Shown here in pieces: positions 4,291 to 30,981 of a stretch of 64,000 nucleotides of DNA. The stretch covers positions 1 through 64,000 of the forward strand of contig NW_004798738.1 in the NCBI RefSeq assembly GCF_000002075.1, written 5' to 3'. Numbering within the stretch: position 1 is the stretch's first letter; every line of letters begins with the position of its first letter. The position numbers and the translations under genes were made by a program. The stretch is from Aplysia californica. Its lineage: Eukaryota. A model generated the notes under the pieces. The model did not search any database. It worked only from the letters and a program-made list of their open reading frames with translations, and was not told the DNA's origin.

Positions 4291-4672
4291 GAGGCAGAGG
4301 AGTAGATGCGATCTAAGCCTGGGGTAGAGAAGCCTCTCGGGCAGATTTATCTGCCGTGGTAGTATAGACGTATTCTTCGACTTACTTAGACCTCCAGTAG
4401 TTCTAGAGGGAAGTCCTCTAGGTAAAGGGCTAAACGTACCGCAAGAAGGTAGTCTCGACAGTTTAATCGGATCATCATAAATCACTAGGGGTAGAATCCA
4501 GGGTTTAATTATCTGTCAGACCTGAAGAAAGAAAACCGATTCTGGTTGTTTGGAGCAATCCAACTAGGCAGGGTGTTGTCTAGGGTGCGAGTAGACGTAA
4601 GACAAGACTTGTTCTTGCAATCTACGCCAGTAGTGCCAAATCCTCCAGGCTAAAGCTTGGGGAGTGCATCAA
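4291..4672 (+). mobile_element. Non-autonomous IS200/IS605-family element
   Basis: Left end has the 22-nt motif (4336-4357) shared with the intact tnpB IS. Right-end hairpin ends in TCAA. Excision restores a reading frame. Confidence 0.7.
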
Positions 4673-4738: not shown

Positions 4739-5125
4739 CTAAGCTGCTTGGACAATTTTTTGATATTGGTATAATTTTTGTTTGGACTTAGGCGTTAGCA
4801 TTAACCACACTTCTTTCTTTAATTCATCCGTGCACAATAGCTGCAAGATTCTTACCACCTCCTCCATCTCTTCATGGGTAAATGCATCATCAATCAATCC
4901 GATCATGCTGTCAAAATCAGCTTGAGTCCAATAGGTGGGATAGGCTTCGCTAAGTAGATAACACCCTTCTCCACTCCAAAGCAGCCCAGTCCCTTCAACC
5001 CAGGTTATATCAGTAACCTGAATCGTTTGACCTAAGTACCGAACCCGATCGCCTACTTTAAACGCACAATCTACGTCAGCCGCTGTTTCTTTATCGGTAG
5101 GCTGCATAGGCGAATGGGTATTCAA
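4739..5125 (-). CDS. Hypothetical phage protein
   Basis: FKVGDRVRY SH3/KOW-like start motif. Confidence 0.45.
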   Translation of the reverse strand: MNTHSPMQPTDKETAADVDCAFKVGDRVRYLGQTIQVTDITWVEGTGLLWSGEGCYLLSEAYPTYWTQADFDSMIGLIDDAFTHEEMEEVVRILQLLCTDELKKEVWLMLTPKSKQKLYQYQKIVQAA

Positions 5126-7734: not shown

Positions 7735-7983
7735 GTGAAAACAAAAACAAAAACAGTATCACTAAATTTTGGCGAATGGTTTCATGTACAGCGCAAGCGG
7801 GCGGGCATCAGCCAGACCGCGATCGCCCAGGCTTTGGGGGTAACGCAGCAATCCGTTGGCAACTGGGAAAACAATCGTTCTCTGCCTCATCTCAGCCCAG
7901 TAGGGATGGCCTGTTTGTGTGAGCTGCTAAAGGTTGACCTCTCAGAACTTGCGGCAATGGCTAGGGATTGGCAGATTAAGTGA
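7735..7983 (+). CDS. XRE/Cro-family HTH transcriptional regulator
   Basis: RKRAGISQTAIAQALGVTQQSVGNWENNRSLP. Confidence 0.85.
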   Translation: MKTKTKTVSLNFGEWFHVQRKRAGISQTAIAQALGVTQQSVGNWENNRSLPHLSPVGMACLCELLKVDLSELAAMARDWQIK

Positions 7984-7997
7984 TAGGATTGATCGAG

Positions 7998-8172
7998 TAG
8001 CCAAACACAGCGTTCTGGCATTAGTACTTCAATATTTTCAAACTAAGATTTTGGAAGCGTCAAGTTTCCACTTCGGCGGTCCACAGTCGGAGTCAGCCCA
8101 AAACCCACAAGGGACACGGGAAGGTGATGCGGTAATGCCCACCATGCGAGGGGAAAGCGATAGCGACTCCTC
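7998..8172 (+). ncRNA. Putative tracrRNA/scaffold RNA, copy B (upstream of the CRISPR array)
   Basis: Shares identical blocks of 27, 14, 12 and 13 nt with 17345-17519(-); the stems between them show compensatory changes. Confidence 0.75.
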
Positions 8173-8783
8173 AACAACACGCAGGCCAATGCAAGCACCA
8201 TTGCTTGCGCTCACTGAAAGGCAGTTCACGTCCTCGATTCGCACCTTGTCAATTTGATAGCAAGTTTTATCTATCTGAAGTGATTTATTGTTCAGGTAAT
8301 GCTTGCGTTTTGTCCGCAAGACTCTTGAGGAGGCAAGGTTCTAAGAAACGCCGTGATTTGAGGCTTATAGGCTGAAGTGTTGATGAACAATTTAGAATTA
8401 TTTACGAATGGGAATTGAAAGATGGTGTGATTTGAGGCTTATAGGCTGAAGTGTTGATGAACATTTTGTTTTAAAACACAGACGATATCCAGATGCAAGT
8501 GATTTGAGGCTTATAGGCTGAAGTGTTGATGAACATTGATGTTATGGAAGAGAAGGTAGATTCTATTCGACTTAAAAAGCCTGGTGAGTGATTTGAGGCT
8601 TATAAGCTGAAGTGTCGATGGACAGGAAGGATATGATTATAAAAATGGGCTTAATTACGTGATTTGAGACTTATAGGCTGAAGTATTGATGGACTAGATA
8701 TTCAAGAGTGGCAAGATAACCTCCCATCATGTGATCTGAAGCTTATAGGCTGAAGTGTTAATGGACTTTCGATAGGTGCAACT

Positions 8784-9242
8784 TTGACATCCTCTCCCTG
8801 CAACCCTAACGGGTATGCACAGAGATTCCTTGGATCGCTCCAAAGATTTCCTGCTGATCTCAGGTCGCCTCTTAACTAGACATCAAATGCAAACGACACC
8901 CTAAAATGTCTCTTCTCCATCCCCGTCAGCTCGACTTCACAGGCATTTTTGAACTGGGTTGCTCATCCCAGTCATGTCCTGCCCGGACGCTATACGTGTG
9001 TTTCGCAACTATTCCCTTAAAGTTTTACATCAACAGGGATTGGTGTTGAAAACCCCATACTTTAACTATTGAGTTGGTTAGGTTCAGATCAAGGCCCACA
9101 TTACTGGCTACCAAGATGTTTATATTTTATCGCAAAGGAGAATAAAACACTGCATTATTGTTCCCTGCGGTCACGCTCCGCTACACCCCCAGCCAAGCTT
9201 TCAGCTATGGGCTGAAGTATTGGGAAGTTTTTCCGATAGCGA
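8784..9242 (-). mobile_element. Non-autonomous IS200/IS605-like insertion in spacer 6
   Basis: TTGACATCCTC...GATTCC reverse right end and a subterminal hairpin near 9185-9225. Removal leaves a ~42-nt spacer. Left boundary inferred. Confidence 0.65.
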
Positions 9243-9864
9243 GTCAATACTTCCGTGAAGGCTTAAAGTGATTTGAAGCTTACCGGCTGAAGTGTCACTG
9301 GACTAGTTGGTTACCCGATAACTCACATACTCCAGTCGGATGTGATTTGAAGCCTATAAGGTGAAGTGTTGATGGACAAGCCAATCACTAAATTGAGATG
9401 CATCAAGCTTGATATGATTTGAAGCTTATAGGCTGAAGGGTTGATGGACTATTAAGCTATGTTTTTGTACAGGCAAGATGATTATGACTTGAGGCTTATA
9501 GGCTAAAGTGTTGATGAACTTACTCCGTGGCGGCGATTTTTAATTCGAATGCAAAGGTAATTTGAGACTTACAGTTTGAAGTATTAATGGACTAGCGGAT
9601 TTCCGCGAAACGCCTTTTTAACAACTGTCTTTTGAGACTGATTAGCTAAAGTGTGGATGGACTGAGATGCAGCTATATTTATCGTGGGCTAAGGGTTGTG
9701 TTTTAAAGCTTACAGGCTGAAGTGTTGACGGACTTTAGGGAAGCTTCCTGTTTGATTGTGGCTCTGCTATAATCTGAGGCTTACAAGCTGAAGTGTTGAT
9801 GGACTCTTGATTACTCAGTCCGCTAAACAAGAGGACGCTAGTGATTTGAGGCTTATAAGCTGAA

Positions 9865-10266
9865 CAAATCGGCGGCAGTCCCCAGCCCTCTGCAGGGTGG
9901 GGAAGGATAGCCCGTGACCGCAGGGAACAATTCTGCGGTAGAATAAAAGCGAGAGTGACACAAACAAACACCTCGTAATCGTTGGACGACAACCCTCAGA
10001 TCCTTGCGGTCTGTTGCTCTTGTCTAACCCAAAACTGACGGATAATAACGATACTGTCCGGCGCATGACGTCGTTAGCCTTCCTTCCAAAGCGCATTCTG
10101 CTTAATATTTGGGGCCAGGAACTGGCCTCGTTAGACGTGGAGTCGCCAACCTCTACTAGCTGATGTTGCTTGCAACAAGCCAGCAAAGCAAGTTGGGGCG
10201 TGGAAGCGTCGAAAGCCTTAAGCTGAGCAGGACGAAACTTCGTCCTCTTAGGGCGAGGTAGTTCAT
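9865..10266 (+). mobile_element. Non-autonomous IS200/IS605-like insertion splitting repeat 15
   Basis: Repeat halves GTGATTTGAGGCTTATAAGCTGAA and GGGTTGATGGAC flank a 402-bp insert with terminal hairpins ending GGTAGTTCAT; no target duplication. Confidence 0.75.
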
Positions 10267-10414
10267 GGGTTGATGGACGAATAGCTCGTGTGATTTAAAG
10301 CTTGCAGCTTAAAGTGTTGATGGACAATTGTGCTTCAGCTTGAGAAAGATGTTGTTGGACGCTCGAACTTCAATCAAATAAAATATTATTCACATCCTGT
10401 TTGAGTTGACGGGA

Positions 10415-10460: not shown

Positions 10461-11990
10461 TCAAACAGCAATAAATAATTCAGGCAGCTGATCAAACTGA
10501 CCTGATTCCATAGCCTTGTGGCTGATCGGCCAACACAGGCTTGCTAATGAATCAAGGCTTGATTCGCTTTCATCTCCCAGTGTGATCAGAAATAGATTAA
10601 CTTGGGCGTCAATCAAGAACTGCTCATACTTGCTTTTGAACTTACTACCTACAACACATACGCCATCAGTGATAAAAACAATATCAGCTTTACTATAGGG
10701 CTTGGGGCTAGAGCGAATCAGCTTTCTTGCTTTATTCAGTGGGGCCATAAAGCAAGTGCCATCCCCCCTAGATTCACTGACTAATTGCTGGATCCATTGT
10801 TGATACATGCTAGCTGAGAGTTTTTGGGGATCCAGGGTAATCGGTTGATGAGCCTCTTCGTCAAAAGGAATAATAGCAACTATTCTATTTTCGTCAAAGC
10901 ATAGGCAGGTCAAAGCGACAGTCAACGCCTTGGCCCACTCTTCTTCAATCCCATCACCCATCCTCATGGAGGCTGAAATATCCAAGCAGATAACTAGAGG
11001 TCCTTTACCAATAGGATCCGTGGATTCCAGCTCGTATTCTAAAAGCTGACCTTCCATCAAAGAACGATAGAAGTTGAGCTTGCGAACGGGGTGGCTTAAC
11101 TGAGCTAACTCTTGGGGTAAGACCTGCTGAAGATCATTACCTAAGGTTATCCCCACTAGCTGACCATGGCCTTCTAGAGGCTGCTGCCTGCGCTTCTGCC
11201 AAGCCACTTCTAGAGCGTGACCCGCCATCTTGAGGATTTGACGTAGCTGAGGTTCACTCTGAAGCAAGTTAGCAATCTCTAGCTGTTGGCCAATGGGGAC
11301 AGGGGCAAAATCTTGAGAACCCTTACCACAGCCCAGTAAATTCATAGCTGCTGTTGTTTGCTCTATGGACTGCTCCGCTGCTGCTACCCCTAGTTCAATC
11401 ACTTCCGTGATTTTCCCCGACTGGTCAGCGATCGCCTCTTGTAATTTAGCGGCAGCCTTAACTTGTTCCTTGCCTTGCTTTGAGATTTGATCAAAGGTCT
11501 GTTTGTCGTTTTGCAGTGCGGCCTCATGAGCCGCCTCTCGCAATGGCTGTAGGTCTTCAATTGGGTGGGCTTCAGATTCTGGATCCTTCTTTTTAAGCTG
11601 CTCTAGGGTTGTACCCAATTGCACAACTAATGTTTCCGTGGCCAGGGCTGCGCCTAGGTAGTCTCCATTGCAGCGGTTGACTAGCTTGTGAAAGCTAGGT
11701 TCTCCAGTCAGCTTTTGATGCAGCTCTACTGCCCAACCATGTTCTGGTTTTGGCTCTAGCCACTCGGGTTCAGGGTCGTAATAAAGGCGATGATAGACCT
11801 CTTGGGCAAAATTCTGGATTGTCCGCACAGTGCAATCTCTGAGCCTAATATCCATATAGTGATTATGGCGAATATAGTCTTGCCAGAAAACCCGAGAGAT
11901 TGCACTTGTCCTTAAGGTGATATCGTTAGTTTTTTCAGGCAGGGTAGTAATTGCAGTCGTATCAATTGCGGTTAAATCAACAGGCATCAA
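10461..11990 (-). CDS. VWA (MIDAS) domain protein, ViaA-like
   Basis: GPLVICLDISASM (DxSxS), GDGTCF, ADIVFITDG. Confidence 0.85.
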   Translation of the reverse strand: MMPVDLTAIDTTAITTLPEKTNDITLRTSAISRVFWQDYIRHNHYMDIRLRDCTVRTIQNFAQEVYHRLYYDPEPEWLEPKPEHGWAVELHQKLTGEPSFHKLVNRCNGDYLGAALATETLVVQLGTTLEQLKKKDPESEAHPIEDLQPLREAAHEAALQNDKQTFDQISKQGKEQVKAAAKLQEAIADQSGKITEVIELGVAAAEQSIEQTTAAMNLLGCGKGSQDFAPVPIGQQLEIANLLQSEPQLRQILKMAGHALEVAWQKRRQQPLEGHGQLVGITLGNDLQQVLPQELAQLSHPVRKLNFYRSLMEGQLLEYELESTDPIGKGPLVICLDISASMRMGDGIEEEWAKALTVALTCLCFDENRIVAIIPFDEEAHQPITLDPQKLSASMYQQWIQQLVSESRGDGTCFMAPLNKARKLIRSSPKPYSKADIVFITDGVCVVGSKFKSKYEQFLIDAQVNLFLITLGDESESSLDSLASLCWPISHKAMESGQFDQLPELFIAV

Positions 11991-13231
11991 TACAATTCCT
12001 CCACTAGGTCTTCTAGCTGGTCAATATAGCCAGTCACCTTTTCACTAAATTCAGCTTGCAACTGGGCTCCATTCTGCTCACACTCAATGGAGAACTTATT
12101 GGCCTTGTCGATCAAATTCTGCAAGTGAGTACGAACATTATCTGCAGCTTGCAGGCAGACGTCAGCAGGAATATTTTGATTCTCGCATTTCTGCTTAAAC
12201 TCAGTAAACTCATTGATTGCAGCTAGATGCAGGTTATCAAGTTGAGTCTTGCATAGGGGGGCAGTATCTACCAGAATCTTTTTAATTTCCTCGATTTCCT
12301 CAGGCTGCTTCCGCCAGCAGCATTGGGGCAATAGCTCATGAAGATGTTCGGTATAGACACAAGTACAGTCTTTAACGTAGGCAAAAGCTTTGAGTAGATG
12401 AATGATTTTAAGTCGACGTCGGGTACTGACTCGGATCCCATTCGCCTCTATTCGCATAAAGCTGGCAGTCAATAGCGCAAGCAGCGCTGGATGAACCGTA
12501 ACTTCAGCAGCCGCTATGGACATCTGCTCTAGCTGGGCTAGGGTAATAAATTCTTGATCCACGGGTGGTCGGGTATTGTCGACGGCCCACTTAAGCGAGG
12601 TTTTAATCGACTTAATTTTAGTCAAGTCACTGACATAAGGCCGATAGATAAAACGATCCGTAAAGGCTTCCAGGTCTTCACTGGTATTGATTTCATTAGT
12701 CGCCCCCACTAACGACTTGAGGCAGCTATGGGTTTTATCAGGATTGTCATAGGTACGCTCTTCCATTAACTCCAGGAGGCTATTATTAAGCACGCCATTG
12801 CCCCGAAATACTTCATCGAGAAACGCGATATGGGCATCCTGGATACGTCCAGTGACATTTCGTCTAAGCACGTCTTGCTCTAGGCTCTTCAGGCTAATCG
12901 GCCCTAGCACTTCATCTGGAGCCATGGCTTTATTTAGTAGCCGATGGAAAAACTTCATGTCCGTAAACGCTTCGCAAATCTCACGAATTAACAGGCTTTT
13001 AGCTACCCCTGGGGGGCCATATAGCAAGGCATTCTGTTGGACTAGTAACGTAGCGAGTAAGCCATCAATGATTTTGTCTCGCTCTAGATGGGACTGATTG
13101 AGTTGCTGCCGTAAGTGCTGCAATAAGGCATGGGGAGATTTAGCTGTTTTAGTTTTAGTAGCAGCTTTAGTAGTAGCTTTAGATCTACCGGCTTTAGATG
13201 ATTGAGTTGAACGGGTTTGAGTAGTTGGCAT
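11987..13231 (-). CDS. MoxR-family AAA+ ATPase, RavA-like
   Basis: Walker A GPPGVAKS; Walker B AFLDEVF; LNNSLLELMEER; GATNE; AFTDRF. Confidence 0.88.
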   Translation of the reverse strand: MPTTQTRSTQSSKAGRSKATTKAATKTKTAKSPHALLQHLRQQLNQSHLERDKIIDGLLATLLVQQNALLYGPPGVAKSLLIREICEAFTDMKFFHRLLNKAMAPDEVLGPISLKSLEQDVLRRNVTGRIQDAHIAFLDEVFRGNGVLNNSLLELMEERTYDNPDKTHSCLKSLVGATNEINTSEDLEAFTDRFIYRPYVSDLTKIKSIKTSLKWAVDNTRPPVDQEFITLAQLEQMSIAAAEVTVHPALLALLTASFMRIEANGIRVSTRRRLKIIHLLKAFAYVKDCTCVYTEHLHELLPQCCWRKQPEEIEEIKKILVDTAPLCKTQLDNLHLAAINEFTEFKQKCENQNIPADVCLQAADNVRTHLQNLIDKANKFSIECEQNGAQLQAEFSEKVTGYIDQLEDLVEELY

Positions 13232-13296
13232 AGGTAGAGTTTAAGTAGATAAAAGTGCAAATAAATTAGAGGGAGATTAGGAGAACTCAGGTGAAA

Positions 13297-14718
13297 TTAA
13301 AAACCAGCGATCGGGTCCGCGCCACCCATCGCTTTCACTTCGTCAAGGTGTTTCTCTAAAGCAGTATTTGCTTTTTTAGTGAGCTGTTTAATGTTGTTCA
13401 TTCGTCGCCTTAGGGTTGATTCTATGTTGGCCACTCGCCCTGCCTCAATACGTTGCAATGCTGCGGCATTGGGCGAGGCAATTAGCTGCTCCAGCTCTTG
13501 GGTTAACTTCTTGTAATCAGAGGCAAAGTTTAGAGACTGACTCAGCTTGGCAGCCCCTTCACCCGCTTTGTTTTCACCGACGCTATCCTTGACGGCTTGG
13601 TCAATCACAATGATGAAATTCTCATACATTTGCTGCATTCGGATCGGATCTGGATTCGAGTCAATAAAGCTAAGGAGTTCTTGGGACTCAGTGAGCAGGG
13701 GCTTGAGCTTGGGATTGTACTCCTGTAAGACTTCCAGTCGCTGGAATATCTTGTCGATACTATTGCGATCCTGTTGGGTAATCTTGGGTCCAAGGCTAAA
13801 TCGATCCACGAGGCTGGCGATTAGCTCCCAGCCCTGATCCAAAGACACCTCCACTGACTGATTAACCGCATGCACTAAGCCATTGAGCATCAATTTGTTT
13901 GTGGCAATCTTGGTCTCTAAAGCCTTGGCCTCTTCTTCTTCTTCTAAGGTGAGTCGCTGCTTTTGGGCCAGCTGGTGCTGTAGCTCTGCATCTTCAAGCA
14001 GCTTATCCTTAAGGGAGGTAATCTGCATGGGACCATCCACAATAATTTGCAGTGAATTCGCAAAGTCTTCAATACTGGGATACTCATAAGCGTAAAAGGC
14101 CAAAGCCTTGCGCACCTCCCTGCGATTGCCCGCCATTGTCTGCATAAATTTCTCCTCCAATTCCAGCAAGAACGTGGCGAGGTCTTCCTCATAACTGTCC
14201 ACTAGCTGCTGCCGATAACCAGCGGCCTCTGCCTTGACTGCCTCTGCCGCTTCAATAGCCGCTTGGATCTGGCTGCCTTCAACGAACCGGAACGGTTTGA
14301 CATAGATCGTATAACGATTGAAGAAGTTAGACTGAGCGTTAGAAAGCTTGTTCCGAAAGTTACTGAGGTTGTAAGAGAAGGGCTTGCGATAACCGCCCCT
14401 CAAGGCTTCCACCGCCTCTTCTGTCATCCCTAAGTCCTCTGCCTCAATGCAAATCGACATGGAGATAGTGCTGTGAACCTCCAAGGAAAGCCGATATAAG
14501 TCCTTGTCCGCAAGATGCTCCCAGATATCATGGACCGTTAAATCACTGCTGAAAGGGATTTTGTCCTGGGCCGCTCGGATAGAAGTATTATCGTGAATTT
14601 TACTAGCGACTAAGGAGTCAACCGTACTGTGGGTACTGGTTTTGAAGGGATCAATAAAGACAGGTTGATTGGGAGTTTGATTTTGAACTTGATTTTGAAC
14701 TTGAGTCATAGATTTCAC
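13297..14718 (-). CDS. Helical/coiled-coil protein leading the AAA-VWA operon (possibly DUF3150-like)
   Basis: 473 aa; family inferred from operon context only. Confidence 0.5.
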   Translation of the reverse strand: MKSMTQVQNQVQNQTPNQPVFIDPFKTSTHSTVDSLVASKIHDNTSIRAAQDKIPFSSDLTVHDIWEHLADKDLYRLSLEVHSTISMSICIEAEDLGMTEEAVEALRGGYRKPFSYNLSNFRNKLSNAQSNFFNRYTIYVKPFRFVEGSQIQAAIEAAEAVKAEAAGYRQQLVDSYEEDLATFLLELEEKFMQTMAGNRREVRKALAFYAYEYPSIEDFANSLQIIVDGPMQITSLKDKLLEDAELQHQLAQKQRLTLEEEEEAKALETKIATNKLMLNGLVHAVNQSVEVSLDQGWELIASLVDRFSLGPKITQQDRNSIDKIFQRLEVLQEYNPKLKPLLTESQELLSFIDSNPDPIRMQQMYENFIIVIDQAVKDSVGENKAGEGAAKLSQSLNFASDYKKLTQELEQLIASPNAAALQRIEAGRVANIESTLRRRMNNIKQLTKKANTALEKHLDEVKAMGGADPIAGF

Positions 14719-15922: not shown

Positions 15923-16291
15923 TTGACTACTCCCCTGGCTGAAGCCTAGGGGATTCCCCTGCTTCGCTTAGGGATTTCGAGCACTTCTTGCTGAAACTTC
16001 TGTCACTTTCCAACAGGACGCTTAGGGACCGTCAATCGTCCCTCTAGACTGTCCGACCTTGCAGTCATCCAGCTTACTTTTGTTGTCTCGTTGCTGAAAT
16101 TGAATCTCTCGCTGATGGAACAACTTTGCTACCGACAGGTATGTTTGTCCTCACGGGATGTTAAGCCCCAACCAATCAGGTCTTTGAGTCTTGCAACTAC
16201 CTTAATTTTACCACGGCAGATAAATCTGCCCGAGTCGCTTTTCCACCCCGGACTGAAGTCACGGGGCTACCAAGCTACCGAGTGTTCTCCC
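15923..16291 (-). mobile_element. Non-autonomous IS200/IS605-family element
   Basis: Reverse right end TTGACTACTCCCCTGG...GGGGATTCC. Left end shares ACGGCAGATAAATCTGCCCGAG (16213-16234) and terminal CTCCC with the tnpB IS. Confidence 0.72.
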
Positions 16292-16962
16292 GTGTATTTC
16301 CCCCAGCCTTAAGACAACCATTCATCTCTTTCCAACTAAGTTTCTAACGTAATTGCTTGGAGATCTCCAACTATTTTCTTGCAAACTCAAGAGCATCGGT
16401 TCATTCACATGTCCAGGCAAACAGTACCTTGTAGTTTTCGAACAAATATTTTAATGCGGTTATTGTCCAGTTCTTTCAATTCATATTTCAACTCGTCCAA
16501 ATGCTCTAATAACTTATCCACTCTTTCCTGCTTGCTGTACCACTGTCAACTTATCCAGCTTGGGCAAGAAATCTAATTTCATCAAGATATTTTCCAGGGT
16601 ATTTTCTCAGACTTTCCAACATGTACCAATACCTTCATGCCCAATAATCAAAAGTATTCGCCTGCATATATCCAAGTGTCCGGCACCACGAACTTCCAGT
16701 TCAAGAATTTGTCACCTAGTAGTCTTCCTTCTTGTCTTGCTGCCTATCCTACTGCTTGCCCTTGACTTTCTTCCTGTCCTGCTTCAAGTTAATCCAGCTA
16801 GAACTGCCGCTTTTTGTTGTTGTCTATGGCTCGGCCCCATGTCCAAATACTGCCTGTCTTTACCCTGAATTTTTCCTACTTACAAAAAATCAATCTGCAT
16901 GTGTCCGCTTATCGGAAAAACTTTGTAGCGTCCCAAGGAGCATGGAAATAAGATATCTTGCC

Positions 16963-16998
16963 GTCCATTAACAATTCAGCCCGCAAAACTCAAACATC
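16963..16998 (-). repeat. Lone degenerate copy of the CRISPR repeat downstream of the Cas12-like gene
   Basis: GTCCATTAACAATTCAGCCCGCAAAACTCAAACATC matches the reverse complement of the consensus at 26/36 positions. Confidence 0.65.
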
Positions 16999-17344
16999 TC
17001 CCGCTTCTTCATCTCCCGCCTCTTTCAGATCACATACAACATCCAGCCGTCCATCAATAGAACATCCAGCCGTCCATACCTTGATTTTGTGCTGGCATGC
17101 ATGTATCCACTTAAAGTTTCTGCTTGTCCTGCTGTTACCCTAGACATTCTCCCTGTCCTGCTTTACGCTAATCCATCCTAGGGGTGTGCAAAAGCCTTTG
17201 CTTAAAAAATATCCAAGCTTGCCATGCCCAAGTTTTCTCACGTCAATTGACTCATCAATTGTTCAGCAAGGTATTTGCCATGTCCAGGGGTGCGCGAAAG
17301 CCTTTGCCTAGCTCTTTAATTGCCAAGGTACGTGGAACATAAGC

Positions 17345-17539: not shown

Positions 17540-19441
17540 TTAAATCTTTAAATCAATCTTTCGTTCCTTCACTGGCTTACGTTTACGACGCTGAAACTTC
17601 TTAGGAGTGTGGGCTGGATTAACTAGCCCATCTAACTGCACTGGCTTAATCTCAGGTGACTGCTCTATGGGGGGAACATCAAAGCTAGAAGCTTCTAGTA
17701 TCTCCCGAGGGGTAGCCTCGGGCTTAACAGACACTGTTTCAACCACCCGATCCGCCCCTCGATCCACAGCCTTCTGCTTAATCAACGAGACGAATTGGCC
17801 TAGGGCAATAGTTCGAATCTGTTCATTCAGTAACCGCTGCTCCTCTCGACCGTTTGGAGAATAACCCTCTCCATCTTTTTTGGGGATAGGCAGGGGACGA
17901 CCTAAAGCAGCCTTGGGATCGAATGTTTTAATCGCGATATATTGATTCGCATCTACAAACCAGGAGCTGTAATAGTGATGGTAGTTCCGTTTGCAGCGAG
18001 ACTGACGCCGTTCAATGGCGACAATTTTAGTATTGATGCGCTTCCAGTTTTCAGAGCCAAGCTTCATATTAGACTGGACTCTTCTAAGGGCATTAATTCG
18101 CTCTTTGAAATGATCCAGTTGAGGATGTTTGATGCGAATTCCATTGGTAGTATCGGCCAAATAGTTAAACCCTAGATCGATGCCAATGGGTGTTGGTCGA
18201 GGATTGCCAGGACTAACCAGTACCCGCAAGGTGAGCTGGAGGAAAAACTTTTGGCCTCGACGAAGGATGTGAAACGAACCAGGCAGGCAGAGTTCAGGGA
18301 TGATCAGATCTATAGCTCGCTTCTCAGCTAAAGCCTGCAGCTTAGATATAGCCACCTGCTTGCTCTTGTGCTGAGAGCACCAGGCATCTACCTTTTTCAC
18401 AACCTGCTTTAAGAATCCCTTGGGGTCTTCAGGCATCTGCTGATCCGTTTGCAGCCAGCGGATTACGTTCAAAAGAGTTTGGCGCTCCTCTAGCTTCTCA
18501 TTCAGCTCTGGGTAGTCCTCTGGATGGGTGCGCATATGCTGCTCTTGTCGGGCCATCAGTTTACCCAGGCGATCGCTGAGCTTAGGGATATATTGCCAGC
18601 TCAGTCCAGGCAACTTGACTTGATCGTTCTCTAGGTCTAATTTGCACTGACCTCGAAAGGACTGGCTAGGGATGGTATTCACATGATCGCCGCGACTCTT
18701 GTAGCGCGGTCGACGAATCTCCTTACGCTTTGGGTCTAAATAATTCTCCCAGGACTTAGCCAAAACAATAGCAATATAGTCATTGATGTAGACCAGGGGA
18801 ATCGTCGCGTCCTCTAACAACTCCCAGCGCTTCTTCGCAAAAGGCTTGCGCAGATCAGTCACACCATAGGAATCAATCAAGGGATCCGTAAGCCAGTGAG
18901 ATTTGACTAGACAGCAGGCGGGGCGCAATTCAATATTGTCGACATCCCAAGACTTGCGTCGGTCAATCCGCTGCTCAATAGCCAGATCACAATACATCGC
19001 CCACTCGCCATCTGAGGCTTTAGTCACCTGTAGTGCGACTGGTGTATTGTATGTGAGTTCGTGGTGAGGAACCTGGGAATCAAAGAACCCCCATCGGTCT
19101 AGGACATCAGGGTCTGCAGGGGTACCAATCGCCCAATGCTTGGGTGCGGGCACCCGCTTATTAGATTTAGCCTCTGGTTCAGCTGGCTCCTCCGGCACAG
19201 AAGGCCGAGAGAATAAGACCTGAGGCAGCTCTAACTTAGGTGGTGGATTCAAGAACCCCCAGGCAGATAAGATGTCTGGATTTACGGGGGCCTCTTGGAT
19301 TTTCTGTAAGCGATTGGAATACTGACGCCATTCCAGTAGCGCTAAGCCTCTGTTATAGACTTGCTTGAGTATCTCCATCCAGCTGATAACCTCAGCCTTC
19401 TCTCTTGGAGAAAGCAGTAGTGGGAATTCAATTGTCTTCAT
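17540..19441 (-). CDS. TnpB-derived type V (Cas12-like, possibly C2c8/V-U2-related) effector, predicted nuclease-dead
   Basis: TnpB-like N-terminus (MKTIEF...VYNRGL); RRPRYK; RuvC-I IGIDLG; GSENWKR; RuvC-II IAIK instead of IAIE; GYSPNG...LN..I...ALGQF...IKQKA; no CxxC finger or DRD-NAA; two large insertions. Confidence 0.75.
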   Translation of the reverse strand: MKTIEFPLLLSPREKAEVISWMEILKQVYNRGLALLEWRQYSNRLQKIQEAPVNPDILSAWGFLNPPPKLELPQVLFSRPSVPEEPAEPEAKSNKRVPAPKHWAIGTPADPDVLDRWGFFDSQVPHHELTYNTPVALQVTKASDGEWAMYCDLAIEQRIDRRKSWDVDNIELRPACCLVKSHWLTDPLIDSYGVTDLRKPFAKKRWELLEDATIPLVYINDYIAIVLAKSWENYLDPKRKEIRRPRYKSRGDHVNTIPSQSFRGQCKLDLENDQVKLPGLSWQYIPKLSDRLGKLMARQEQHMRTHPEDYPELNEKLEERQTLLNVIRWLQTDQQMPEDPKGFLKQVVKKVDAWCSQHKSKQVAISKLQALAEKRAIDLIIPELCLPGSFHILRRGQKFFLQLTLRVLVSPGNPRPTPIGIDLGFNYLADTTNGIRIKHPQLDHFKERINALRRVQSNMKLGSENWKRINTKIVAIERRQSRCKRNYHHYYSSWFVDANQYIAIKTFDPKAALGRPLPIPKKDGEGYSPNGREEQRLLNEQIRTIALGQFVSLIKQKAVDRGADRVVETVSVKPEATPREILEASSFDVPPIEQSPEIKPVQLDGLVNPAHTPKKFQRRKRKPVKERKIDLKI

Positions 19442-19824: not shown

Positions 19825-21090
19825 TTGATCCACTCCCCCGACTAAAGTACGGGGGATTCGGGACTCAAGCAGCGATTGCCGTCAGAGACGGTCTAACATC
19901 GCCTACTCCCAGAGACAGAGATCCTGCCTCTTTAATGTTGTTCGCTGCGTTACCATCACGGTCATTGACCGTCTGACAACTAGGACAGCGCCAACGCCGC
20001 ACATCTAAGGGCAACGACTCCAGTACATGCTTGCAATGGTTACAAGTCTTGCTCGACGGATACCACTGGTCTACATAACCCACAGTCTTGCCCTTTTTGC
20101 AGGCAACAAACGCTAAAATTTGCAGGAATTCACGGAAGGCTAGATCGCTGACTTTACGACCCCATAGCCGCTGCATTCCCTTTAAGTTAAGCGTCTCAAA
20201 AAATAAGTGGTCATACTGGTCTGTAAGCTGATGAGCCAGCTTCCAAAACCAGTCTGTTCGCCTGTTCTTGATGGCTTCATAAGCCCGAGCTAAATGCTTT
20301 CTAGCTCGTTCACGCCCCTTAGAACCCTTCTGCTTTTTAGAAAGGTGGCGATGGGCTAGCGCGATCTGATTAATTCCTTGCTTTAGAAACAAAGGACTCT
20401 TGATCTCAGAACCACCCGATATCGTCAGGAAAGTCTTTAATCCAAAATCAAACCCTGCGCTTTTACCTGTCATGGGTTGTTGATGTTCGTCTACGTGATC
20501 TGTGACGACGAAGATAAATATCTCGCCTAGTGGATTACGTTTGACGGTGATGGTTTTGACGTTTCCTTGGATCTCGCGACTGTTCCAGTATCGATAGATC
20601 TGCTGGCCAATCTTGATCCGACCTTTGCCAAGCAACTTATAGCTTGACTGCTTGAGGGTGAAGGATTTGTATTTGATTCGCTTCTTAAACCCAGGTGGCT
20701 TAGTGCCTCGACTATGGTACTTGAAGAACAACTGGTAGGCTCGCTCTATGCGCTGGCAGATATCCTGCATCGATTGAGAACCTACCAATTGCCAGTACGC
20801 TGAGGTCTTGCGCTTCTTGGCAATGTGCTTTTGCAGGTTGGAACAGCTTAAGTGCTGGCCATAGAGCCGATAATATCGCTTGTGCAAAGCAATACAGTGA
20901 TTCCATATGCTAGAGGCAGCATTAATCGACTGATGAAGCTTCTTACAGCGCTTATGGTTATATAGCTTGAACTTAAACGTTTTCACTTTTATACTTTATC
21001 GCGAATTAAAAGACGGCAGATAAATCTGCCCGAGTCCTTTTCATCCCTGCTCTAAAGAGACAGGGCTTTCAAGTTCCCGTATGCTCTCCC
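19825..21090 (-). mobile_element. IS1341-type (IS200/IS605 family) element, tnpB only
   Basis: Right-end hairpin ends TCAA at 19825; left-end hairpins 21013-21070; preceded by TTTAC; interrupts ORF 21052-21336. Confidence 0.8.
19865..20986 (-). CDS. tnpB: RNA-guided endonuclease TnpB (intact D-E-D and Zn finger)
   Basis: GFDFGLK, FFETLN, CNHC...CPSC, DRDGNAANNI. Confidence 0.93.
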   Translation of the reverse strand: MKTFKFKLYNHKRCKKLHQSINAASSIWNHCIALHKRYYRLYGQHLSCSNLQKHIAKKRKTSAYWQLVGSQSMQDICQRIERAYQLFFKYHSRGTKPPGFKKRIKYKSFTLKQSSYKLLGKGRIKIGQQIYRYWNSREIQGNVKTITVKRNPLGEIFIFVVTDHVDEHQQPMTGKSAGFDFGLKTFLTISGGSEIKSPLFLKQGINQIALAHRHLSKKQKGSKGRERARKHLARAYEAIKNRRTDWFWKLAHQLTDQYDHLFFETLNLKGMQRLWGRKVSDLAFREFLQILAFVACKKGKTVGYVDQWYPSSKTCNHCKHVLESLPLDVRRWRCPSCQTVNDRDGNAANNIKEAGSLSLGVGDVRPSLTAIAA

Positions 21091-22088: not shown

Positions 22089-23018
22089 AATATTTTCAAC
22101 ACAACTTTTGATATTGTTTTAGGGCTGGGTGCACACAGCCCTTTTTGTTAATTTGATGCTGCTTCAATCGCATTCTCCCAAGCACTTTGCAACCTATTGA
22201 AAAAGTGATCTTTCCAATCATGACCAATGCTAACTGTCGTTGGCTTGCGGATTACCTTCAATCCAGGCAGTTCGTATTGCAAGCAGTCTTGAAAATCAGC
22301 CAAGAACTCATCCGAGTAATCCTCTTGTCCGATCACACATCCTTGAACTCAGACTGAACTTCAGCGCGGAACTGCTTCAACTCACCATCTAGGCGATCGA
22401 TACCTTTCTCATTGTGACGGACGTTCTCAGTGATACCTGAAACTTGGGACTCGATATTTTGTACATTGGGCATGTGGCTAGCTCCTTAGCTACAGCCTGC
22501 GGGAGGGGAATCCACGGCAGGCATTCGATCACGGGCTAGCAATCAAAGGCAAGCAAGCCCGATTGTTTTCATAACTCATATCGATGGTTCTTACCAAGGG
22601 CTGATCACAATCAGTTAGCCAGAGACAGCTAATCGTTTCATGAGGCTGAATCTTAGACCAGTTAGCCACTAACCAAAACCTGTGATTGCCCAGCGGATAC
22701 AAGGTGCAACCTAAAGTCCCAGTTGGAGAATGGTTAAGCTGCAGCTCAAAGACTAATCCAGCAATAAACTCAATCTGATCAGAGCTATTTGTAATATGCA
22801 TTTCAACGCCATAGGGCTCACAACGATAATCAATCGCTAGCTCAGCAGGGATACTCATATTAGTTACAAAAATAAAAATTGGCAAGCGAGTGATTACGGA
22901 TTTGATCTGAAAACTAGAACTTCCTCAGAAATAAAATGCTTGTAATTGTAGAGCAAAGATCCAGCTTTTGCGTAACCACCCTTGAGGCAAGCAAACATTT
23001 ACCATGTGGATTGTTTTG

Positions 23019-26332: not shown

Positions 26333-27319
26333 TTAAACTGCAGCCCCAGCCTTGAGCAACTTATCAATCAGCTGAGCCTTGAATGGTGTACGAGGCAACG
26401 TATCAATCTGTTTTTCCAGTAGCTCTAAGCCCGAGACAGGTAGCTGTCCAGGTACTTGCCCAGAGCTTAGGAGGTTTTCAGCAATGGGCTGGTCATGGTA
26501 CTGATGGATTAACCTTAGGTTTTTAGGGTCAGCTCGTCCTTCCCCTAGGCTGCCAATGGGAAAAGCTAGGAACTCTTCCGCTAGATCCCGATTAGGCTTA
26601 GCAGAAATGCTATACGCAAACCCCTCCCTAGGTCCAAGGCCATAGTAGCCTTTCATATGGCCCTGGTCTTGGGTTATACGTGCATACAACGGATCAACTC
26701 GCAACTCTTGATTAGCGGTAGGATTACCATAGAACTGGCTAGGGGTTTGACGAGAGCTCGTATTAAACCCACGGACGCCGCCTCGGGTCATGTACAGCTG
26801 CCATTTATCCTCAGGGTTATCAGCAATCCGTTTGCTTAGAGCATCATGGACATCTCCCAGGTGCTGAATCTGTACTGAGTCTTGCATCTTGTGGGCGACA
26901 TCAGGCCAGTCCCAGTCTGCCATCGGAGTTTTAGCGAAAGAAACATACTCAATCGGTCGCTTACCCCGTGCTGATTCAATCTTGTAAACAACTTCTGGAT
27001 CTGGATAGCTCAGGTACTGACCCGTCTGTTTGTAATTTTGGTTATAGGTATCCATTAATTGCTGAGCGTCCTCAGCCGTTAGCTTTGAGTTACGCAAATA
27101 GAAATCAATTCGATCTCCTTGGCCAAATTTTGGATCGATAGTGCCGCGATCGCGGTGTTCCATTTGCGAGCTAGATGCGTAGGGTACCGACTCATCCGTA
27201 ATGGTCACCTGTTTTACCTGGGCTTTTGGTAGCCCCTTAGGAATCTGTTGCTGCTTTTTCTGCAGGGGAACTGGCTTGGGTCGAGCAAATCGTTTAAGCA
27301 TGATTAAAGTTCGGTACAT
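26333..27319 (-). CDS. Hypothetical protein, possibly virion-associated
   Basis: 328 aa; N-terminal KQQQIPKGLP resembles KQIPPGLP of 42445-44796. Confidence 0.55.
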   Translation of the reverse strand: MYRTLIMLKRFARPKPVPLQKKQQQIPKGLPKAQVKQVTITDESVPYASSSQMEHRDRGTIDPKFGQGDRIDFYLRNSKLTAEDAQQLMDTYNQNYKQTGQYLSYPDPEVVYKIESARGKRPIEYVSFAKTPMADWDWPDVAHKMQDSVQIQHLGDVHDALSKRIADNPEDKWQLYMTRGGVRGFNTSSRQTPSQFYGNPTANQELRVDPLYARITQDQGHMKGYYGLGPREGFAYSISAKPNRDLAEEFLAFPIGSLGEGRADPKNLRLIHQYHDQPIAENLLSSGQVPGQLPVSGLELLEKQIDTLPRTPFKAQLIDKLLKAGAAV

Positions 27320-30300
27320 TGAGATTTGGCAGAAGAATCAAAACACTAGGGTTTAACTTGCCAACCCTTCTTGCGAGCCAGGGCTTGAGCCCGACGCTTC
27401 ATTGCTGAGGAAGTCTGCTGAGCCTTCATACTCTTTTGAGCCTTGCGCTCATTGATGCGAGCCTGGGCTGCTGCCGCCTGCTTCTTCATCGCTTCCACCT
27501 TTTCTGGGGTAATGTCAGCCCGAGCCTTGCTCACCTTGTCGCGATAATCTTGAATTGACTTATCCCTTTGCTGGCCTAGGGTCTGTTGACGCTGCTGGTA
27601 TCGCTGCTCCCCTCGCTGATTAACGTCAGCAACAACATCCTCTGATAGACCTGGACGGTTGGAAATCACCCCCTCATTAGAAGGCATGCCCATGTTGGCA
27701 GCCTCTTCAATCGTTTTGTTATAGGCATCTTGAGCATGACGGCCTTCAAGGATGACCGCATCTAGCCCGTCCGAGAGCGCGTAGTACGCCTGCTTGCTCG
27801 CTGGAGTTGACCCTTTGAACTCTGGCTCCTGGTCCCACCTGGGCTCGGGCACGGAGGACCAGTCCTGAGAGCGATCCACGGAGCCTGCNNNNNNNNNNNN
27901 NNNNNNNNNNNNNNNNNNNNNNNNNNNNNNNNNNNNNNNNNNNNNNNNNNNNNNNNNNNNNNNNNNNNNNNNNNNNNNNNNNNNNNNNNNNNNNNNNNNN
28001 NNNNNNNNNNNNNNNNNNNNNNNNNNNNNNNNNNNNNNNNNNNNNNNNNNNNNNNNNNNNNNNNNNNNNNNNNNNNNNNNNNNNNNNNNNNNNNNNNNNN
28101 NNNNNNNNNNNNNNNNNNNNNNNNNNNNNNNNNNNNNNNNNNNNNNNNNNNNNNNNNNNNNNNNNNNNNNNNNNNNNNNNNNNNNNNNNNNNNNNNNNNN
28201 NNNNNNNNNNNNNNNNNNNNNNNNNNNNNNNNNNNNNNNNNNNNNNNNNNNNNNNNNNNNNNNNNNNNNNNNNNNNNNNNNNNNNNNNNNNNNNNNNNNN
28301 NNNNNNNNNNNNNNNNNNNNNNNNNNNNNNNNNNNNNNNNNNNNNNNNNNNNNNNNNNNNNNNNNATTGAGATCAACGGAGCTATAGGTGCGCGGTGATA
28401 ATGCCTGCTCCAAGGCATCAGGGACTGCACTCGCTCCCCTTAGGTTTGCTTGGGGGGTGGAGACCTGAGACTGGTAGATGTGAGACTCCGGCCCCAAGGG
28501 CACCGTCTCCATCTGGCCCGTGCGCTGGAGGAACTCAGGGGAAGACATCTCTTCCATCAACCGATATTGCTGATTCTCCTGGGGACTCATTAGCCGACGA
28601 GCTGTGGTCTGGTTGATATCAATGTCTGAGCCAAACTCAATGGGCTGCTGAGGATATACGCGAGGTCCAGATTCCTGCACGGGACTCGTACCCAGACCTT
28701 CGCTGATTAACTGGCTAGCTAAGGTTGCACCCCCCTTGGCCTCGGGTAAAACAGATTGGTTCAATGGTTGGGCCGAACCTATTTGCCCCTCAGGGGGAAG
28801 GCCCAGTTCCGCTCTAGCATTGGGGCCGAGAGTACCCTTGAGCATCCCTGATTGATAAGGGATATTCCAGGGGTCCTTACTGGAGCCTTGAAACTGGGTA
28901 TGGGGCGTAGCTGTGGGCGTTCCCTTAGCCATCCCTTGCTGGGTCATTCGGTCTCCTAAGGCCATATCTAAATCCACGAGGGGATTAGACAAGGCCATGC
29001 CCTGGTCAATGTAATCCAGTCGTCGAGCCAGTTGACCTTGGGGGACAGAGGTAATATTCTGATTAGTTTGGGCTCCCCCTAATCCTTGGATTGCACGTAC
29101 GGCGACGTTATCTGTATCAGCAATCTCATGGGGGAATTTCTGCATTCGCCAGTCTGTAACCGCTCTAATCCTAGCTGCTCTTTTTGGATCATATGCAGCT
29201 ATCTCTGGAAGCTTTGCCTGCAGTTTCTTCACTTCGTCAAGGGGCATGTCATATGCCTTGACGAGGTTGCCTAATGCCGTTTGATCCTCACTCTTTAAGC
29301 TGTACATGGGATGGAGTTCACCGCCCTTGCGAGCCCCAAAGGTATTAGCTTGAGTAACATCATTAGAAGCCTGCAGGCTAGCCCGATTCGCTGCACTGCC
29401 AAAGATAGGGTTCTCTGGGTCGAGCTGCTGGGCAATCTCATAAATCTCCTCTGGCCTCAGGCTACCCGCTCGCTTGTCGTACCGATTATTGGACGGCATC
29501 TTTTGAGAGAGGTACCTGTCCCCCGTATTGGGATTGCTAATCTCCTCCCATAGCTGCCGCTCCGGGATGGCCACCGTGCGACCGCCCAGCTGGGCTGGAT
29601 AGTTGGTATAAGGCTCCTGAGTCTGAGGATCTATCGGATGATTGACGGGAGCAAAGCCCATTAGCTTATTCCTGTTCGTCAAGGGATAAGCATTGTAAGG
29701 CCCCACCATCTCATCAAAGCGAGTGGCAAAGTTGCTGGGCATAGGTGTGTAGCCCAAAGCCTGCAGCTCACTCGGCTGTAGCATCGATAGATCAACTCGC
29801 AACTCTTGATTAGCGGTAGGATTACCATAGAACTGGCTAGGGGTTTGACGAGAGCTCGTATTAAACCCACGGACGCCGCCTCGGGTCATGTACAGCTGCC
29901 ATTTATCCTCAGGGTTATCAGCAATCCGTTTGCTTAGAGCATCATGGACATCTCCCAGGTGCTGAATCTGTACTGAGTCTTGCATCTTGTGGGCGACATC
30001 AGGCCAGTCCCAGTCTGCCATCGGAGTTTTAGCGAAAGAAACATACTCAATCGGTCGCTTACCCCGTGCTGATTCAATCTTGTCAACAACTTCAGGATCT
30101 GGATAGCTCAGGTACTGACCCGTCTGTTTGTAATTTTGGTTATAGGTATCCATTAATTGCTGAGCGTCCTCAGCCGTTAGCTTTGAGTTACGCAAATAGA
30201 AATCAATTCGGTCTCCTAGGCCATATTTTGGATCGATAGTGCAGCTATCGCGGTGTTCCATTTGCGAGCTAGATGCGTAGGGTACCGACTCATCCGTAAT

Positions 30301-30981
30301 GGTCACCTGTTTTACCTGGGCTTTTGGTAGCCCCTTAGGAATCTGTTGCTGCTTTTTCTGCAGGGGAACTGGCTTGGGTCGAGCAAATCGTTTAAGCATG
30401 ATTAAAGTTCGGTACATTGAGATTTGGCAGAAGAATCAAAACACTAGGGTTTAACTTGCCAACCCTTCTTGCGAGCCAGGGCTTGAGCCCGACGCTTCAT
30501 TGCTGAGGAAGTCTGCTGAGCCTTCATACTCTTTTGAGCCTTGCGCTCATTGATGCGAGCCTGGGCTGCTGCCGCCTGCTTCTTCATCGCTTCCACCTTT
30601 TCTGGGGTAATGTCAGCCCGAGCCTTGCTCACCTTGTCGCGATAATCTTGAATTGACTTATCCCTTTGCTGGCCTAGGGTCTGTTGACGCTGCTGGTATC
30701 GCTGCTCCCCTCGCTGATTAACGTCAGCAACAACATCCTCTGATAGACCTGGACGGTTGGAAATCACCCCCTCATTAGAAGGCATGCCCATGTTGGCAGC
30801 CTCTTCAATCGTTTTGTTATAGGCATCTTGAGCATGACGGCCTTCAAGGATGACCGCATCTAGCCCGTCCGAGAGCGCGTAGTACGCCTGCTTGCTCGCT
30901 GGAGTTGACCCTTTGAACTCTGGCTCCTGGTCCCACCTGGGCTCGGGCACGGAGGACCAGTCCTGAGAGCGATCCACGGAG
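26692..30981. repeat. ~1.19-kb direct duplication (26692-27883 and 29790-30981)
   Basis: Near-identical copies offset by 3098 bp, each ending at an N-gap. Confidence 0.85.

Follow-up and report, generated by a model that had tools for sequence, protein, structure and literature searches.

Two copies of a conserved structured RNA in a 64-kb stretch of an Aplysia californica assembly probably encode a tracrRNA-like scaffold of a predicted compact Cas12/TnpB-fold effector

Which function could account for two diverged copies of one structured RNA on a single contig? The question is raised by contig NW_004798738.1 of the Aplysia californica RefSeq assembly GCF_000002075.1, whose first 64,000 nucleotides (nt), read on the forward strand, are the whole stretch analyzed here and are referred to as the window. 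An earlier note, made from the bare letters, had described a duplicated scaffold RNA at 7998-8172 (+), here called copy B, and at 17519-17345 (-), here called copy A. It had proposed that both are under structural selection and resemble the trans-activating RNAs (tracrRNAs) from clustered regularly interspaced short palindromic repeat (CRISPR) systems with Cas12f or Cas12k. Both copies, with ~180 nt alignable between them, and the four exact blocks that they were said to share (a 27-mer, a 14-mer, a 12-mer and a 13-mer) were located as claimed. In its full extent, copy B spans 7998-8180 (+; 155.6 bits) and copy A 17519-17340 (-; 109.7 bits). The sequence GGCGGTCCACAGTC occurs at two sites only in the window, one in each copy, and a profile search with nhmmer and a covariance model likewise found exactly two copies. 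Our analysis makes it probable that each copy is the gene of a tracrRNA-like scaffold, ~180 nt long, for a predicted compact Cas12/TnpB-fold effector, which is encoded beside copy A.

The evidence starts from the fold. Each copy folded at a z score of about -2; the local hairpins were alike, and the long-range pairs of the minimum-free-energy structures differed. One such long-range pairing, GGCAUUA:UAAUGCC, was ruled out; a hairpin with a GUAA loop, H4, covaries instead. Four variable parts had been said to keep their pairing. True covariation was found in the stems of hairpins H1 (GGAAGC/GUUUCC in one copy versus GAGAC/GUCUC in the other), H4 (GGUG/CACC versus GAUA/UAUC) and H5 (GAGGGG/CUCCUC versus AGGGGA/UUCCCU), whereas in CCC-ACAA-GGG versus CCC-UUCG-GGG the stem is invariant and the loop alone changes. 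A fifth stem, H2, was absent from the earlier description (ACUUCGGC/GUCGGAGU versus CGUCUGGC/GUCAGGCG); 5 of its 8 pairs covary, and its 8-nt loop, GGUCCACA, carries GUCCA in both copies. Copy B thus reads, on the + strand, as a 5' module (7998-8047, comprising a hairpin at 8000-8019 and an anti-repeat-like part at 8019-8044), H1 (8053-8069), H2 (8070-8093, with its loop at 8078-8085 and GUCCA at 8079-8083), H3 (8097-8120), H4 (8123-8143, with its GUAA loop at 8132-8135), H5 (8148-8172) and a tail, CAACAC (8175-8180). The GUCCA loop of copy A lies at 17441-17437 (-).

Copies A and B alone show double changes at 8 of 35 pairs. Covariation was counted in 11 scaffolds, namely the two copies and nine homologs from other loci, which share five conserved hairpins with 36 pairs, 96.0% of them paired. 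Double-sided changes were present at 28 pairs (65 cells), compared with 11.8±2.3 pairs (16.3±3.4 cells) in shuffles (0/500) and 4 to 8 pairs in slid controls. RNAalifold, which had been suggested as a check, recovered the same five hairpins unaided. H4 is closed by GUAA in 8 of the 11 scaffolds and by GAAA or GCAA in the other three, and H1 to H5 are linked by the invariant single-stranded stretches AGCCCAAAACC, GGACACGGGAAG and GGAAAG.

Where the RNA lies in the relatives bears on what is being conserved. In the Acaryochloris-type loci L001, L002, L004 and L009, the 130-nt scaffold core is contained within the 3' end of the effector gene, where it encodes ..EILEASSFHSGGPQSE.AQNP.GTREG.., and is followed by the stop codon, then a leader of ~150 nt, then a CRISPR array whose repeats are of the same kind as in the window and end in TGGAC. 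The covariance model placed the scaffold within the 3' end of the gene also in the more distant loci L020, L019, L022, L023 and L024, and the core overlaps the part of the gene that codes for a disordered tail. Effector, scaffold and array follow one another in shared orientation in L001, L004, L009 and L020. In total, 9 of the 11 scaffolds are at or in the 3' end of an effector gene (8 of the 9 relatives' loci, plus copy A, which starts 21 nt past the stop codon of its effector open reading frame [ORF]). Copy B and the scaffold of L033 have no adjoining effector gene. The latter, at 805-929 of L033, a 45-kb metagenome contig, is solo and partly decayed, with the loop GGUCCGCA, and is an orphan like copy B. 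A DNA-motif scan for the scaffold returned 32 stretches, 31 of them chance matches.

Given this overlap, the copies might have a protein-coding history only, as decaying duplicated 3' ends of effector genes in which the blocks stand for a conserved peptide (..GGPQSE.AQNP.GTREG..). Residues 470-550 of the family protein P0002 indeed match window positions 7955-8197 (57% identity, E 7e-19), a 107-codon open frame (7934-8257, +) runs through copy B in the frame of the relatives' effector tails, with the basic C-terminal motif deleted, and AQNP..TREG recurs in several family proteins. However, the nucleotides are kept irrespective of the frame: the blocks AGCCCAAAACC and GGACACGGGAAGG translate as AQNP..TREG in Acaryochloris and in P0011, P0014 and P0018, whereas P0010 of L020 reads them in another frame as QPKT..DTGRG. 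Disorder is predicted for the encoded segment, and its residues change along with the covarying stems, following the nucleotides over H1 (EASSF, ELAEF, EVSNL). Copy A is noncoding, since the relatives' frame there reads GAT AGC CAG TAA after a 1-nt deletion, and no ORF of at least 80 amino acids (aa) overlaps it; despite the deletion and the in-frame stop, it keeps every helix through compensatory changes. Conservation in two reading frames and in a noncoding copy, together with residues that trail the stem covariation, shows that selection acts on the RNA, as had been proposed for both copies. With double changes at 28 of 36 pairs as well, we regard a purely protein-coding history as very improbable. 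The open frame through copy B was probably kept by the constraint on the RNA, and a small protein may be made from it.

What the RNA might do is suggested by the H2 loop. The earlier note had seen that GTCCA is complementary to a repeat end, TGGAC. A degenerate CRISPR array (array B, 8353-10325, +) begins 180 nt downstream of copy B in the same orientation and contains at least 15 repeats of 36 nt (GTGATTTGAGGCTTATAGGCTGAAGTGTTGATGGAC) with ~35-nt spacers; its repeats do end in TGGAC, apart from the first three, which end in TGAAC. Loop GUCCA and repeat end UGGAC are combined in the window, L001 and L004. Because neither the loop nor the repeat end differs among the window and Acaryochloris-type scaffolds, the pairing can be tested only in distant loci. 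In L020, the loop is UAGUGCAA and the 36-nt repeats end in CGGCAC (GUGC:GCAC). The loop of L022, GAUUGCUGC, has UUGCU, and GGCAA was found nine times compared with 0.5 expected and never on the other strand (UUGC:GCAA). L023 and L024, with loops GCGUGCUAC and GGGUGCUGC, both have GUGCU, and their tags are GGCAC and AGCAC; [AG]GCAC occurs 14 times in L023, about every 21 to 30 nt (1.5 expected, P 8e-10), and 10 times in L024 (1.6 expected, P 8e-6).

Copy A has a mini-array of its own downstream (16411-17290, -), read by the same loop sequence, GGUCCACA, if the pairing holds. Here TGGAC occurs eight times, with first bases at 17286, 17076, 17053, 16967, 16845, 16499, 16469 and 16415 (-), compared with 0.88 expected (P 4e-6) and none on the opposite strand. 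Each tag is followed by a candidate short guide, and three of the eight retain a longer repeat tail, TTGATGGAC or TTAATGGAC. In a blind pentamer search, the top or near-top strand-specific pentamer of each of the four mini-array loci paired with its H2 loop at all five positions, which random pentamers do in 2 to 6% of cases. Loop and tag or repeat end change together across five loop types, maintaining a duplex of 4 to 5 bp, and the complementarity noted in the window accordingly extends to covariation across loci. The H2 loop is very likely an anti-tag, and we conclude that the "array" of several loci consists of tags and short guides only.

A structured RNA in this position could instead be an element that acts in cis, in the 3' end of the mRNA or in the array leader, involved in stability, termination, processing or acquisition, with an incidental match between loop and tag. 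Such a role would fit its constant place, with the effector ORF on one side and the leader or array on the other; moreover, long-range pairing with the repeat is statistically weak, and the contact between effector and RNA is inferred. It would not account for the covariation of loop and tag over five loop types or for the strand bias of the tag. Nor does it explain why copy B and the solo L033 copy persist without an adjacent ORF, and why size and architecture (five to six stems and a pseudoknot to the repeat end) fit the nearest solved tracrRNA and omega-RNA. A cis element without a scaffold function is in our view unlikely.

The putative partner of the scaffold is the 633-aa product of 17540-19441 (-), which is predicted to adopt a Cas12/TnpB fold and to be nuclease dead. 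By sequence, it matched OrfB_IS605 weakly and NCBIfam V_cas_c2c8 (NF038192) over the RuvC half only, with 129 bits against a cut-off of 350; its best PADLOC match was Cas12u2 (2.3e-43, partial), and its sequence profile matched Cas12p at 3.7e-18. An AlphaFold model (predicted local distance difference test score [pLDDT] 83, predicted template-modeling score [pTM] 0.73) showed disorder in an insertion at residues 64-129 and in the C-terminal tail. The nearest structures found by Foldseek were Cas12p-TrxA (5e-14) and then ISDra2 TnpB (7e-9), and further relatives were dCas12f, LaTranC, Cas12f and Cas12k (E 2e-4 for Cas12k). At RuvC-II, IAIK in the family is aligned with IAWED of Cas12p and IAVEDL of TnpB. 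Of 28 members compared, 14 have K at this position, 6 have E and 4 have Q, and 15 retain the RuvC-I Asp; a Cys-rich zinc finger and a RuvC-III segment are lacking. The window effector keeps D422 and has Lys505 at the position of the RuvC-II Glu. Based on these motifs and the model, it is predicted to bind DNA without cutting, because of the Lys at the Glu position and the lack of both RuvC-III and the zinc finger. The comparison with Cas12f/Cas12k tracrRNAs thus stands insofar as the RNA is tracrRNA-like, but the effector belongs to a distinct family without RuvC-II Glu and RuvC-III.

Proteins of this family are ~520 to 630 aa in size and end in a disordered tail with a conserved basic motif, RNRKRExAIG. 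A 5.8-billion-protein index held only nine homologs, an exhaustive profile search gave 103 proteins at E<1e-30 as well as ~25 clusters of full length, and protein-pattern scans of metagenomes and IMG/VR had no match. The V-U2 effector of cyanophage CL131 is 26% identical to the window effector over 27% of its length, which sets the two families apart. L020 (ERZ4210451 contig), which has a regular array of at least 18 repeats, and L022 (SRR30597350 contig) lie beside phage tail and terminase genes, indicating phage-borne systems without the RuvC-II Glu. A search for a conserved partner gene upstream of the effectors in other loci found none, and no cas1, cas2 or Tn7 genes were present among the window ORFs scanned.

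With a TnpB-like effector at hand, the copies might also be two ends of an insertion sequence (IS), and the RNA would then be the omega-RNA (right-end RNA) of a TnpB-type element that is, or recently was, mobile. The relatives' RNA overlaps the 3' end of a TnpB-fold gene, an intact TnpB (19865-20986) adjoins beyond the effector, and copy B resembles a truncated element. On the other hand, there are two copies only in 64 kb and few in public data, and downstream of the RNA come a leader and arrays whose spacers are many and different, not a single guide at an element boundary. The effector lacks RuvC-II Glu and RuvC-III. Agreement with Rfam, a known IS end or a dispersed repeat had been named as a point to check, and nothing of the kind emerged: Rfam had no match over the scaffold at the gathering score, nor any at E<1, and neither TnpA nor IS ends were found. 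We consider an origin as IS ends quite unlikely.

For the scaffold explanation, further contacts with the repeat were found outside the H2 loop. In several loci, repeat nt 25-30 are complementary to the six nt directly after H5, as CAACAC:GUGUUG in copy B and L004, CAAAGU:GCUUUG in L001 and, read after prediction, CAAAGC:GCUUUG in L009; two positions of this 6-bp duplex covary. In L020, nine bases after H5 pair with repeat nt 25-33, but the stretch is HIP1-like and the evidence weak. The 5' module is found in the window copies and not in the Acaryochloris loci. Its part CAUUAGUACUUCA in copy B pairs with repeat nt 21-33 over 13 bp (reached by 7 of 300 shuffles, P~0.02), and UUUCAAA pairs with the 5' part of the repeat; copy A forms matching helices (11/13 and 10 bp) with its own degenerate repeat. 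These helices are suggestive and not statistically secure. A supposed homology between the 5' module and the coding sequence of the window effector itself fell short of significance and was withdrawn.

Judged from their sequences, the copies are not a simple duplication, and the word "duplicated" is imprecise. They are identical over the first 27 nt and share an upstream TGATAssAT box, while their cores are only 65% identical. The core of copy B is 92% identical to L001 and L009, with leader and repeats collinear with theirs, and ~90 nt coding for the basic C-terminal tail are deleted from it between two GTGCTTG repeats. In the simplest reading, copy B would be the remnant of an Acaryochloris-type locus (gene 3' end, leader and array) that recombined with an A-type 5' module, and copy A would be the resident effector's own scaffold, moved from the ORF to the 3' untranslated region. 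Because copies A and B do not differ in the single-stranded blocks or the H2 loop, the resident effector could plausibly use both scaffolds.

Taken as a mechanism, the scaffold explanation would run as follows. The scaffold RNA would be bound by the effector, and guides would be supplied by array B, with its 36-nt repeats, or by mini-arrays of a 5- to 9-nt tag plus a short guide. A guide would dock via the tag:loop pseudoknot lying beside it. A second short duplex would be added, either between repeat nt 25-30 and the tail that follows H5 or, for the copies of the window, between repeat nt 21-33 and the 5' module. The complex would then bind DNA without cutting it and act as an RNA-guided repressor or roadblock. 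Copy B, as an Acaryochloris-type locus that lost its effector gene and was fused to the 5' module of A, would probably serve the resident effector in trans.

Several points weigh against this explanation. The alignment used for the pair counts was fitted to the model, and its four Acaryochloris-type sequences are close kin. The three leader-proximal repeats of array B (8353-8534) do not differ from one another, as would be expected if spacers had been acquired recently, and it is these newest repeats that end in UGAAC and so give a C·A mismatch in the middle of the 5-bp duplex; this counts against a strict requirement for a full tag:loop match. RNAduplex energies of the whole repeat with the scaffold were no better than those of shuffles in any locus, and a long contiguous anti-repeat was therefore rejected. 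By identity, the match of the 5' module to the reverse-complemented repeat was not significant either, and its origin as such a copy was dropped, the helix count alone being suggestive. The position of the second anti-repeat varies by locus, being in the 5' module, the tail or the leader. Apart from the inverted match of one mini-array guide described below, no convincing targets of spacers or guides were found in the window and the relatives' loci, with the phage collection not searched. Finally, catalytic rearrangements are known in TnpB, and the term "nuclease-dead" is derived from motifs and a model.

A broader proposal goes beyond the window, and we advance it tentatively, as possible but with less than an even chance of being right in full. 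It holds that a Cas12-like family of cyanobacteria and cyanophages without RuvC-II Glu and RuvC-III has its scaffold written in the coding sequence of its own disordered tail, that guides are loaded by a 5-nt tag alone, and that arrays shrink to tags with ~12- to 20-nt guides used for transcriptional control. Arrays could shrink to strings of tags and guides in this proposal because the 5-nt tag would suffice to load a guide. The window would then show a scaffold leaving its ORF, plus a second, chimeric scaffold whose array is used in trans.

If the scaffold explanation is true, it would supply the missing guide-RNA component for a compact, uncharacterized Cas12-like family near V-U2 and Cas12p. 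Dual coding of protein and RNA is plainly exemplified, with the same nucleotides kept in noncoding DNA as in two reading frames. The results also suggest that guides are loaded by a minimal rule, the pairing of a 4- to 5-nt tag with the scaffold loop; this would explain both degenerate arrays and mini-arrays. The role of standalone effectors without RuvC-II Glu and RuvC-III in cyanobacteria and phages would become testable, and a compact effector that may bind DNA uncut is a possible programmable DNA binder.

The surroundings of the two copies offered candidate expression signals. Extended -10-like boxes were seen 9 nt upstream of copy B (TGATAGGAT, 7981-7989, +) and, as a counterpart, upstream of copy A (TGATACCAT, 17536-17528, -); promoter and terminator scans flagged nothing at either copy, these boxes included. 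The leader between scaffold B and the array (8181-8352, +) is collinear with the Acaryochloris-type leaders and contains TTGTCA-N17-TATCTA, spotted by eye and not flagged by the promoter scan, and a conserved TGCTTGCG hairpin motif. In most loci, a conserved motif, (G)TGCTTG(C/T)A, stands directly after the effector stop codon and recurs immediately ahead of the array (8289-8299 in the window; 4958-4970 and 5066-5078 in L001; also L004, L009, L019, L020, L006 and L007) and could be a processing or protein-binding site. A third, partial copy was considered at 22602-22629 (+), where 22 of 28 nt agree with copy A over its promoter-proximal sequence and its first 15 nt (TGATCACAATCAGTTAGCCAGAGACAGC); no scaffold core follows, and it was rejected. 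An 82-aa ORF of XRE-type helix-turn-helix (HTH) character (7735-7983, +) ends 15 nt before copy B, and its membership in the system is uncertain.

Array B is interrupted by two insertions of ~400 to 500 nt, at 8767-9260 and 9866-10267. The first gave a weak glmS-like Rfam match below threshold (E 0.16), and the second splits a repeat (9844-9866 and 10268-10279). In mini-array A, the guide after the last full repeat (16944-16962, -) has a 16/19 inverted match 380 nt away (16563-16581, +; 0.01 expected), which could be a self-target or a duplication relic. Direct repeats of 41 nt lie at 16756 and 17135, spaced 379 nt.

Between the two copies, 10461-14718 (-) encodes a 473-aa ORF without family match, a MoxR-type AAA+ ATPase and a VWA protein, the last two resembling the RavA/ViaA pair; no link of this gene block to the RNA-guided system was found. 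A plasmid megablast match was traced to an unrelated noncoding element at 15923-16295, which shares 85% identity with intergenic DNA of the Acaryochloris marina MBIC10699 plasmid pREC2. A hairpin of this stretch, CTCGGGCAGATTTATCTGCCG, is present at 4336-4357, 16213-16234 and 21013-21034, and the stretch may represent a small mobile element or noncoding RNA not recognized before. Elsewhere in the window, a perfect 211-nt direct repeat (26692-26902 and 29790-30000, spaced 3098 nt) lies beside or inside a 1023-aa ORF without Pfam match (27346-30417).

Among known systems, Cas12p ("Cas12 hacker," type V-P) is the closest solved relative of the effector by both fold and sequence, and some family members are phage associated, as is Cas12p. 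Its multi-stem tracrRNA of ~185 nt forms a 4-bp pseudoknot with the last four nt of the repeat (PDB 9jfs/9jg3; bioRxiv 10.1101/2025.01.20.633832), and its authors consider a repeat-end pseudoknot general for Cas12 tracrRNAs (bioRxiv 10.1101/2025.01.20.633832). However, Cas12p is an active, TrxA-dependent nuclease with a RuvC-II Glu (IAWED), whereas the present family has Lys there and neither RuvC-III nor the zinc finger, for which reason the system is not assigned to Cas12p. The pseudoknot partner in Cas12p is nt 7-10 of the tracrRNA instead of a hairpin loop in the middle of the RNA, and having the scaffold within the ORF, as in most members here, is a further difference. The omega-RNAs or right-end RNAs of TnpB (ISDra2 etc.) are alike in overlapping the 3' end of a TnpB-fold gene and in combining several stems with a pseudoknot beside the guide. 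Such a 3'-end overlap was seen in the loci of eight relatives, while copy A lies past the stop and copy B has no ORF. The present system differs in that no transposase, IS ends or dispersed copies were found and guides would come from arrays or mini-arrays 150 to 270 nt downstream rather than from an element's flank.

The tracrRNAs of Cas12k (V-K) and Cas12f are likewise long and structured, lie between effector and array, and use short bipartite repeat:anti-repeat pairing; Cas12k is nuclease dead and cyanobacterial, with truncated repeat-spacer units (bioRxiv 10.1101/2021.02.06.429022). The present RNA has no sequence or Rfam likeness to them, and the effector is distant from Cas12k, as the Foldseek E value indicates. 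No tnsB, tnsC or tniQ was found among the scanned window ORFs, where MoxR, VWA, TnpB and HTH proteins are the neighbors, and the lack of Tn7 genes shows that the system is not V-K. TldR and dCas12f-sigmaE, RNA-guided transcription factors derived from nuclease-dead TnpB or Cas12f, share a truncated or inactivated RuvC, short guides and predicted binding without cleavage. In the sigma-associated clade, arrays are minimized to a half repeat near the tracrRNA, and inactivated V-U groups have been described (Altae-Tran et al., PMC10691335), so that the kind of system is already known from another clade. Here, in contrast, no flagellin, ABC-transporter or sigma-factor partner was found, canonical arrays remain in several members, and the clade is nearest Cas12p and V-U2.

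V-U2 (C2c8) gave the best profile matches and has similar hosts, cyanobacteria and cyanophages, and minimal loci without adaptation genes; no tracrRNA was found in the V-U2 locus of cyanophage vB_AphaS-CL131 (PMC6293099). The partial, below-cut-off profile score and the limited identity of the CL131 effector set the present system apart from V-U2. The searchable literature held no description of this scaffold, of its location within a CRISPR-associated effector's ORF tail, of the loop/tag covariation or of mini-arrays with 5-nt tags. The system would function like a type V tracrRNA or TnpB omega-RNA and is placed outside the curated families with which it was compared.
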